Sequence record: NC_010821.1
Reading direction: 5' to 3' (one strand)
Length of the DNA stretch: 64,000 bases
Made by a program: the position numbers and the translations under genes. The notes below the pieces were generated by a model. It searched no databases. It was not told where the DNA came from and worked only from the letters and a program-made list of their open reading frames with translations. This document shows, piece by piece, positions 57,107 through 58,033 of the stretch. Numbering within the stretch: position 1 is the stretch's first letter; each line of letters starts with the position of its first letter.

Positions 57107-58033
57107 ATGAGCCTAGGTATTAACATACAAGCTGTAAAAGATATCCAGCGGTTTCGTGATACAATCCATTTCAACGAATTGGCACGAGATATCTTCAAGA
57201 ACGACGGCTTTGATGAAATAGCTTATAATGACGCAAGAGCTGCACTGGTTAGAGTGTCGGCTGCATATCCACGTGAGTCTAAGATCACTACCAAGGCACG
57301 ATCGATTGCTGACCAAATAAAAGCTTTTGGTTCCATGGCTAGACATGACTTTCCAGTGTTGGATTATAAACCAGCTACTACGCTGATGCATGTCCGTAAC
57401 TGGTTGGCTAAAGTGGACTGTGATTATACGGATAACATCGACATAATCATGACACCTTATTACAATGGGTGTCGCGTGGAGTTGGTGTATCAAGGTGGGT
57501 CCCTCCATAAAGCTATTACCAAAGGTGGTGGTATCATGGGTACAGACTTTACCATGAACGCATATCTCGTTGAGGGTATCCCACAGCAGATTCTTGATAA
57601 CGAGCGCATTAGTATTCGTGGAGTCATTACGTCCACACTAAACCATGTTTGGGGTGAGGACGAGAAACGTGTTATCTCGGCATCGTTGATGTCTACTGAG
57701 CCTACCAACATAAACCTTAACTACCTAGTGTTTGTACCAGATGACTGGCATGTACCGGGTGCAATGCTAAACACAAAAGATCTCAGATCTATATCACTAG
57801 CATGGGATATGGAGCCAGCTGGTATGGATTCATTTCCAGGTCAGTATAAAGAGATCGGTTATCTTGAAGAGAAGATTGAAACTTTTCGGAAAGAGATTAA
57901 AAGTAAGATCCCCTACTCAGGCATTCTATTTACCGTCGATTCACTTGGACGTAAAATGGAGCTTGGTTATACATCGATCCACCCTGAGTGGGCAATTCTA
58001 CTAGAGGAAAAATCCAATGTCAAATCGCCATGA
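57107..58033 (+). CDS. inactive paralogue of the NAD-dependent ligase adenylation domain
   Basis: colinear with the N-half of 58017-60104, but KMDG is replaced by YYNG and DG by SG; no OB, zinc-finger, HhH or BRCT domains. Confidence 0.75.

Follow-up and report, generated by a model that had tools for sequence, protein, structure and literature searches.

A conserved LigA-related gene, predicted to be non-catalytic, overlaps the complete ligase gene of the nucleus-forming jumbo phage 201phi2-1

The subject of this study is gp332, a gene lying in a 64,000-nucleotide stretch of sequence record NC_010821 (hereafter the window; positions are those of the window unless another phage or contig is named). 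The window is 100% identical to Pseudomonas phage 201phi2-1 (Serwervirus), a nucleus-forming jumbo phage, and its position 1 corresponds approximately to position 186001 of the record. RefSeq and GenBank give the same label, 'NAD-dependent DNA ligase', to gp332 and to its downstream neighbour gp333. The product of gp333 has the domains Ia, nucleotidyltransferase (NTase), OB, Zn, HhH and BRCT, with every essential residue present, and Pfam recognised Nlig-Ia, PF01653, OB, HhH and BRCT in it. The open reading frame (ORF) of gp332 is intact and encodes 308 amino acids between an ATG at 57107 and a TGA at 58033, and an in-frame TTG at 57095 is an alternative start that would add 4 residues. Comparison of sequences indicates that gp332 is very probably a selectively maintained, non-catalytic paralogue of the N-terminal half of a chimallivirus LigA, which arose once and has been kept overlapping a complete LigA gene.

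We assessed the relationship of gp332 to the ligase by sequence and by predicted structure. The original prediction had aligned the ORF with the first half of the downstream ligase, and the homology was borne out: BLASTP matched residues 109-296 of gp332 with residues 109-316 of gp333 (E=2e-8, 25% identity, 220 columns), and the only Pfam family found in gp332 was the LigA adenylation domain PF01653 (E=7e-17, 62 bits against a cutoff of 27). Among the PHROGs the best match was phrog_3359 (E=1e-57), over profile positions 2-253 of 325, that is, all but the OB part. The AlphaFold2 (AF2) model, built from a 66-sequence alignment, reached a predicted local distance difference test score (pLDDT) of 91.3 and a predicted template modelling score (pTM) of 0.87, and superseded a model from 11 sequences whose pLDDT was only 67. 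Foldseek searches with the model returned as top matches the LigA adenylation-domain structures of M. tuberculosis, E. coli, H. influenzae, T. filiformis and others (E ~1e-20, template modelling (TM) score 0.6-0.72). The protein ends 8 residues past the motif V position, where the OB domain starts in gp333, which agrees with the earlier description of an intact ORF that stops at the OB boundary and overlaps ligA by 17 nucleotides (nt), gp333 beginning at 58017. Its net charge (-7) and pI (5.6) are the same as those of real Ia+NTase fragments. These results place gp332 in the LigA adenylation-domain superfamily by sequence and by predicted fold.

The equivalog models gave a different outcome for the two proteins. 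gp333 passed the cutoffs of TIGR00575 and NF005932 with 515 and 527 bits, and gp332 failed both, with 63.5 bits against a cutoff of 444 and 60.3 bits against 369; it also matched the NCBIfam LigB model weakly (E 4e-8). In LigA, the adenylated K115, the KxDG motif, E173, R200, K290, Y35 and D36 are essential (PMC8123306). The positions essential in E. coli LigA were therefore located in 15 real phage ligases and in 16 proteins belonging to the gp332 family. The remaining essential positions reportedly come from mutational studies of the Shuman laboratory, and the nicotinamide mononucleotide (NMN)-binding residues of domain Ia, Y22, H23 and D32, are said to have been defined by Sriskanda and Shuman in 2002.

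The mapping revealed that the real phage ligases keep essentially every essential position (15/15), including the Lys and Asp of motif I in all 15. In the gp332 family, E113, D117, E143, E173, R208, R277 and K314 (E. coli numbering) were lost in 16 of 16 members, D138 was also among the lost residues, and R308 was replaced by Glu, a reversal of charge, in all 16. The nucleophile K115 was gone in 15 of the 16, as were R136, R200 and K290, and a segment of about 14 residues that bears R200 and R208 was shortened. Only one member, P0015, has the motif I Lys, and it lacks motifs III, IV and V. In gp332 itself KxDG has become YYNG (residues 118-121), RGE has become RGV, DGxxFK has become SGILFT, and the motif V Lys has become Glu300, so that the adenylated Lys, the motif Asp residues and the final Lys are missing as originally predicted. 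At the positions of E173, D285, K290, K314, E113 and R136 the protein carries V173, S271, T276, E300, T116 and K139, and at those of Y22, H23, D32, Y35 and D36 in domain Ia it carries R27, D28, E37, Y40 and N41, with only Y35 retained. The Phabio-type branch is less derived, having kept the Ia NMN-binding residues and TxGDG; Y22, H23, D32, Y35 and D36 are still present in Phabio gp331 and P0015, and partly in P0010 and P0013.

The original prediction had named adenylation through an alternative Lys as a finding that would overturn it. No Lys was conserved across the gp332 family: the best, K31 in domain Ia, was found in 14 of 16 members, and at the other Lys positions Arg can take its place. 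It is therefore unlikely that the family shares an alternative nucleophile, and this reading was rejected. Among the best 150 matches of a profile search of 1.84 billion representative proteins, all 144 proteins outside the family keep the catalytic set, indicating that the dead state is specific to the gp332 clade. To judge from its residues, gp332 would be enzymatically inactive. It fails every functional LigA criterion that we checked, namely motif I, the nucleotide contacts, the Ia NMN residues, the OB, Zn, HhH and BRCT domains and the equivalog score.

We then examined how widely and how strictly the gene is conserved. A protein search found ten orthologues at 73-39% identity, four further cluster representatives came from the wide profile search, and GenBank supplied Phabio gp331 (27-28% identity) and Viktualia; Phabio gp331 entered the local alignments and trees only. 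The relatives amount to 15 further members with 73-27% identity, all intact and 281-339 amino acids long, and the family forms 6 clusters at 50% identity among the representative proteins searched. At all ten loci with a visible flank the gene order was dCTP deaminase, 0-2 small ORFs, the dead gene and a full LigA. The dead gene overlapped the LigA start by 14-44 nt at each of these loci, and a purine-rich Shine-Dalgarno sequence for the ligase lay within it (10/10).

The strength of selection was estimated from the ratio of nonsynonymous to synonymous substitution rates (dN/dS). 201phi2-1 and the IMG/VR contig L020 share 96% amino acid identity at a synonymous divergence of ~0.3-0.38, and for this pair gp332 gave a dN/dS of 0.056-0.077 (56 synonymous and 14 nonsynonymous codon changes), compared with 0.041-0.056 for the real ligase, 0.025-0.028 for the dCTP deaminase and 0.11-0.18 for gp334/gp335. 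Four further unsaturated pairs gave 0.075-0.12 for the gp332 family and 0.07-0.08 for the real ligase; more distant pairs were saturated at synonymous sites. None of these values is near 1. The constraint was spread along the full length of gp332 and was not confined to the 3' junction, and residues 76-154, which hold the degenerate motif I and the TKGGG..DFT loop, showed 16 synonymous and 0 nonsynonymous changes against L020. By these estimates, purifying selection on gp332 equals that on the real ligase and is stronger than that on the neighbouring hypothetical genes.

The 11 closest members of the family share 64 invariant columns. At some 30 sites at least 80% of the dead family share a residue where real ligases hold another one, indicating that gp332 is under constraints of its own; these sites include a KAR..Q..FG linker, D81, H134, K139, Y153, G157, Q160/161, IPG216-218 and E294. 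A decaying pseudogene was rejected, as none of the 16 ORFs is interrupted, the dN/dS of the gene does not exceed 0.12 and the gene order is preserved. The earlier proposal of a retained pseudoenzyme thus stood, with relatives that carry the gene and dN/dS far below 1. gp332 fits a pseudoenzyme on two counts that can be read from the alignments, the absence of the catalytic residues and the combination of purifying selection with conservation across lineages.

To place the dead clade, a maximum-likelihood tree of the Ia+NTase region was built from 29 sequences with E. coli LigA as outgroup. The dead proteins, including the Phabio copy, formed one clade (support 100/100) on a long stem of 1.48 substitutions per site. 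This clade was nested in the chimallivirus ligases beside the real ligases of PhiPA3, PA1C and Phabio (98/95), and the ligases that adjoin the 201phi2-1-type dead genes formed a separate clade (100/99). The tree therefore speaks against gp332 as a recent tandem copy of gp333; the approximately unbiased test did not reject grouping the dead clade with its neighbouring ligases (p=0.11). The topology supports an origin of the family in one ancient event that duplicated or truncated a jumbo-phage ligase. In the corresponding region PhiPA3, PA1C, Psa21, RVTF4, Goslar, Noxifer and RP12 each have one annotated full-length ligase, and the dead gene must therefore have been lost several times or have moved between lineages.

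The positions of the genes, domains, motifs and signals are collected in Table 1. The hairpin downstream of gp331 suggests that this gene is separated from a gp332-gp333 unit, and no terminator-like element was found between gp332 and gp333. Because of the upstream hairpin, the lack of one between the genes, the GAGGA inside gp332 and the overlap, we infer that gp332 and gp333 are co-transcribed and that their translation is coupled. A programmed frameshift that would fuse the two products was rejected, since the frame of the overlap varies by locus (17, 44, 14 and 23 nt versus 37 nt).

Table 1. Features of the gp332-gp333 locus in the window, and ORF X in related contigs (contig named with its own coordinates)
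Feature	Position	Strand	Remarks
gp331, dCTP deaminase	56465-57052		Upstream neighbour of gp332
Terminator-like hairpin	57058-57087	+	8-bp GC-rich stem, TTCG loop, T-run; consensus match; 5 nt past gp331 stop
gp332, 308-aa LigA paralogue, predicted catalytically dead	57107-58033	+	Ia-like and NTase-like; without OB, Zn, HhH, BRCT
Ia-like helical module	57107-57331	+	gp332 residues 1-75; helices 7-28, 37-53, 55-60, 67-73; pLDDT 81-98
NTase-like (adenylation) domain	57332-58006	+	gp332 residues 76-300
Degenerate motif I, TPYYNG	57452-57469	+	ExKxDG in LigA; Lys nucleophile replaced by Tyr118, Asp by Asn120
TKGGG..DFT loop	57518-57553	+	TRGDGxxGEDVT in LigA; inside residues 76-154, the most constrained part of gp332
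Degenerate motif III, RGVIT	57617-57631	+	RGEVV in LigA; Glu173 equivalent is Val173
Degenerate motif IV, SGILFT	57917-57934	+	DGIVFK in LigA
Degenerate motif V, PEWAILLE	57983-58006	+	PRWxxAYK in LigA; R308 replaced by Glu, motif V Lys by Glu300
Shine-Dalgarno GAGGA for gp333	58004-58008	+	Strong; within last gp332 codons
Overlap of gp332 3' end and gp333 5' end	58017-58033	+	17 nt
gp333, complete NAD+-dependent LigA, 695 aa	58017-60104	+	Motif I EWKMDG at 58362-58379
ORF X	L002 3417-3974
ORF X	L003 3373-3972
ORF X	L006 5394-5978
ORF X	L007 5444-6004
ORF X	L008 5438-5998
ORF X	L009 5390-5992
ORF X	L011 5444-6001

Several further features of the neighbourhood were observed. In the metagenomic relative L005 the dCTP deaminase is likewise followed by a nearly identical GC-rich hairpin (~5941-5970; TTCG loop, T-run), which precedes the gp332 orthologue. 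In most relatives a fast-evolving ORF of ~186-200 amino acids, here called ORF X, lies directly upstream of the dead ligase; it is missing in 201phi2-1 (57053-57106), L005 and L020, so that 201phi2-1 and L005, which both have the hairpin, are two of the loci without it. ORF X had no Pfam or PHROG match, and hhalign showed no relation either to ligase, of which it might have been a fragment, or to the small ORFs upstream of the ligases in single-ligase phages. PhiPA3 has a 564-nt unannotated gap upstream of its ligase (L004 3392-3956), with an open frame of ~150 codons in which no similarity to the dead ligase or ORF X was detected. An HNH_3-type endonuclease ORF (weak Pfam match) lies between the dCTP deaminase and ORF X in the relative L007 (4792-5388), a putative homing endonuclease is encoded a few genes upstream in Phabio, and gp324 of 201phi2-1 is an endonuclease; mobile endonucleases seem frequent in this region. 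A Thg1-like protein (tRNA-His guanylyltransferase family) is encoded a few genes upstream of an HD_4 phosphohydrolase in L005 (1205-2008), L011 (288-1091) and L009 (1-635).

Two observations concern gp333. Compared with other chimallivirus ligases, the gp333-type ligases have an insertion of ~9-16 residues after a conserved Trp between Ia and motif I (58300-58350, residues ~96-111). The BRCT region of gp333 (59784-60041, residues 590-675) weakly matched the candidate defence protein PDC-S48 in PADLOC (E 6e-7), and this match probably reflects merely a shared BRCT domain.

How might a dead ligase half be of use beside a complete ligase? As a whole, the explanation that we favour, and to which we give an even chance, is that gp332 is a dead LigA paralogue which is made together with the ligase and acts by binding, as an accessory or regulatory subunit. 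The 5' half of a jumbo-phage ligA was very probably duplicated, or a full copy truncated, and the adenylation nucleophile, the contacts to adenosine monophosphate (AMP) and nicotinamide adenine dinucleotide (NAD+) and the DNA-contacting arginines were lost. The gene has since been retained directly upstream of, and overlapping, a complete LigA in a small clade of Pseudomonas-type nucleus-forming jumbo phages. gp332 and the ligase would be produced from one transcript by coupled translation, and gp332 would work by binding and not by chemistry. It may occupy in trans the surfaces normally contacted by the NTase domain of the ligase itself, or alternatively it may hold a partner or substrate for the ligase during phage DNA replication and repair. 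The site of the new function is probably the remodelled surface of the former active site, comprising residues 76-161, the KAR..Q..FG linker, H134, K139, Y153, Q160/161 and E294.

Chimallivirus ligases act inside the phage nucleus, as described for PhiPA3 gp257 (PMC10643120; PMC12908238). Among specific mechanisms we tentatively rank first a role of gp332 as partner or regulator of the ligase, because its genetic coupling to LigA is invariable, because the retained domain pair is the one that contacts OB, HhH and DNA in LigA, and because the former active-site face is strongly constrained. Several points weigh against this reading. We found no direct evidence of gp332 expression: no RNA runs were listed for the sequence, and gp332 was not mentioned in the papers that we searched. 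LigA is monomeric and is not known to form NTase-NTase pairs, so that a gp332-gp333 heteromer is not expected a priori. Gene overlaps are common throughout the 201phi2-1 genome, which makes the overlap weak evidence for physical partnership, and seven related phages manage with a single ligase, so any role of gp332 must be accessory. The net charge is as in real NTase domains and gives no hint of a DNA-mimic or a new DNA-binding surface; judged by charge and pI, both were rejected.

The main rival to a partner or regulator, which we consider unlikely, is a ligand sensor or sponge in which the Ia+NTase pair binds NAD+, NMN, AMP or an ADP-ribose-derived signal without turnover, and either reports or buffers the NAD+ state for the ligase or soaks up a host immune signal. 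A role in NAD+ sensing has been suggested for the solo Nlig-Ia domains of 81 phages (PMC9503650), the Phabio-type branch retains the NMN-binding residues of Ia, and no part of gp332 is under tighter constraint than the former pocket region. The residues themselves argue the other way. In gp332 and its subclade the Ia positions hold R, D, E, Y and N/Q; E113, E173 and K314 are replaced in 16 of 16 members, and K115, R136 and K290 in 15, for the most part by residues that are small or hydrophobic. Because the NTase contacts and the Ia residues of the subclade are replaced, canonical NAD+ or AMP binding would not be a conserved property of the family, and a sponge that works through the canonical pocket is disfavoured. 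The absence of a PADLOC match for gp332 also speaks against a sponge, and membership of gp332 in a defence or anti-defence family was rejected on the same search. If gp332 does bind NAD+-related ligands, it would link the locus to the phage-host conflict over NAD+.

Binding to DNA offers another route to a non-catalytic role, in which gp332 would use the NTase fold as a platform to mark or protect nicks or to compete with the ligase for them. The fold is predicted with high confidence and the TKGGG..DFT loop, which corresponds to the motif Ia region of LigA, is strongly conserved, but the DNA-contacting R200, R208 and R277 are lost, the R200/R208 segment is shortened, and OB, Zn-finger and HhH are all missing. 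Moreover, the protein is acidic, at the charge and pI given above, with no positive charge gained, and the reversal of R308 to Glu is universal in the family. We regard a nick binder as improbable.

Slightly less probable again, and a conjecture, is a decoy that resembles the front half of the ligase and draws off a host defence sensor or inhibitor aimed at phage or bacterial LigA. Fold and surface would be retained minus the activity, a narrow, lineage-specific distribution such as this family shows is typical of arms-race genes, and at deep divergence the family has evolved somewhat faster than the ligase (27% versus ~40% identity between 201phi2-1 and Phabio). At short range, however, purifying selection is strong, with no sign of diversifying selection. 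We know of no defence system that senses LigA, and none was found in the literature or with PADLOC.

The family-conserved polar residues that are new relative to LigA (H134, K139, Y153, Q160, Q161, E294 and D81) could conceivably belong to a different active site built on the old scaffold. Most of them vary somewhere among the 16 members, with E294 (16/16) as the exception: four members have A, R, M or F in place of K139, and P0015 has N in place of H134. We recognised no grouping of residues that looked catalytic and obtained no matches to other enzyme families, which makes such a neo-enzyme, itself a conjecture, very improbable. Finally, a functionless product, from an ORF kept open only as a leader that delivers ribosomes to gp333 or from a slowly decaying pseudogene, would account for the conserved overlap and embedded Shine-Dalgarno sequence (the C-terminal 'LLEE' partly encodes it), but it is refuted by the selection data (dN/dS 0.06-0.12 over the full length, residues 76-154 free of nonsynonymous change far from the junction, the 64 invariant columns and an ORF intact in every member down to 27% identity), as well as being at odds with the confident AF2 fold, and we give it next to no weight.

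In nucleus-forming jumbo phages gp332 may be a dedicated non-catalytic 'pro-ligase' subunit, evolved from the phages' own LigA, that physically partners the ligase or senses the NAD+/NMN state for it and so tunes nick sealing in the phage nucleus, a possibility that we hold to be doubtful, and one that, if true, would make gp332 the first pseudoenzyme described for the DNA-ligase superfamily.

A second candidate family came to light in Ralstonia jumbo phages. The gp332 model matched an uncharacterised 235-amino-acid RP12 protein in BFVD (Foldseek E=1.5e-12, TM 0.69), an entry that we linked to RP12 ORF162 by its length and by weak sequence matches. ORF162 (235 amino acids; L017 2075-2782) shares 4 nt with the 5' end of the RP12 ligase gene. 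Homologues with 38% identity lie just upstream of the ligase in Ralstonia phages FLC4-3B (L021 2938-3681) and FLC1-1B (L022 1438-2181), and the members, 235-247 amino acids long, are annotated 'hypothetical protein'. A profile of the three sequences could be aligned colinearly, between motifs I and IV, with that of Ia+NTase (hhalign E=1e-4, 161 columns, probability 57%), and within the family there was no conservation where LigA has the Lys, the Asp and the Glu of motif III. These results are suggestive only of a second, Ia-less and more degenerate dead NTase beside a jumbo-phage ligase. Goslar gp120, which has 235 amino acids and lies downstream of its ligase, was considered as a relative of ORF162 and showed no similarity to it.

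The label 'NAD-dependent DNA ligase' on gp332 and its relatives is, on the evidence of their residues, a functional mis-annotation. DNA ligases belong to the most thoroughly studied enzymes, and our searches turned up no report on a LigA paralogue that is conserved but catalytically dead; PMC9503650 covers solo Ia domains only. A gp332 that proved to be a partner or regulator of the ligase would give DNA replication and repair in the phage nucleus a further layer of control and would be a viral example of a dead-paralogue subunit. The gp332 family is narrow, with its 6 clusters, so its biological reach is limited unless the Ralstonia-phage family is related; should the ORF162 family be confirmed as a second dead NTase beside a ligase, such a subunit would be a recurrent solution in jumbo phages.

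We compared gp332 with known systems that share part of its organisation. The adenylation fragments of LigA (E. coli 2OWO and 5TT5; M. tuberculosis LigA 1-328, 1ZAU and 7K72) have the same two-domain fold and boundaries, whereas in gp332 the residues for adenylation and for contact with NAD+, AMP and DNA are replaced, and the protein is encoded by a gene of its own instead of arising by proteolysis or engineering. The standalone phage Nlig-Ia proteins (Iyer, Burroughs, Anantharaman and Aravind 2022, PMC9503650) are likewise a non-catalytic part of LigA encoded by a phage as a gene of its own. Those proteins are limited to Ia, still have the NAD+-binding residues and are found where the phage encodes no ligase, whereas gp332 combines Ia with a dead NTase, no longer has the ligand residues of Ia and always adjoins a complete LigA. 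The split ligases of T5-like phages (the PR1 heterodimer, PDB 9HU3/9I5I; phrog_3359 and phrog_3498) also have two adjacent ligA-derived genes, and the PR1-type A subunit, of ~330 amino acids, is a structural match to gp332 (Foldseek E 5e-14) with the same best PHROG. In the split ligase the A subunit carries the catalytic and OB domains and the B subunit Zn, HhH and BRCT, and both are needed for one enzyme; in 201phi2-1, by contrast, gp333 is complete alone, and gp332 appears dead and is without OB.

E. coli LigB is likewise a second, shortened gene of the LigA family within one genome. LigB has preserved its catalytic motifs and OB/HhH and seals DNA, if weakly, whereas gp332 has neither the catalytic motifs nor OB/HhH. 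In function the closest parallels are dead paralogues that serve as subunits of their active relatives, the trypanosomatid AdoMetDC 'prozyme' and D12 of the vaccinia capping enzyme, for which complex formation and activation have been shown biochemically. These differ from gp332 in that it is known here from sequence alone and that LigA is not known to oligomerise. In each case, however, a dead paralogue under selection stands beside an active enzyme, and by analogy this arrangement may provide the working model for gp332.

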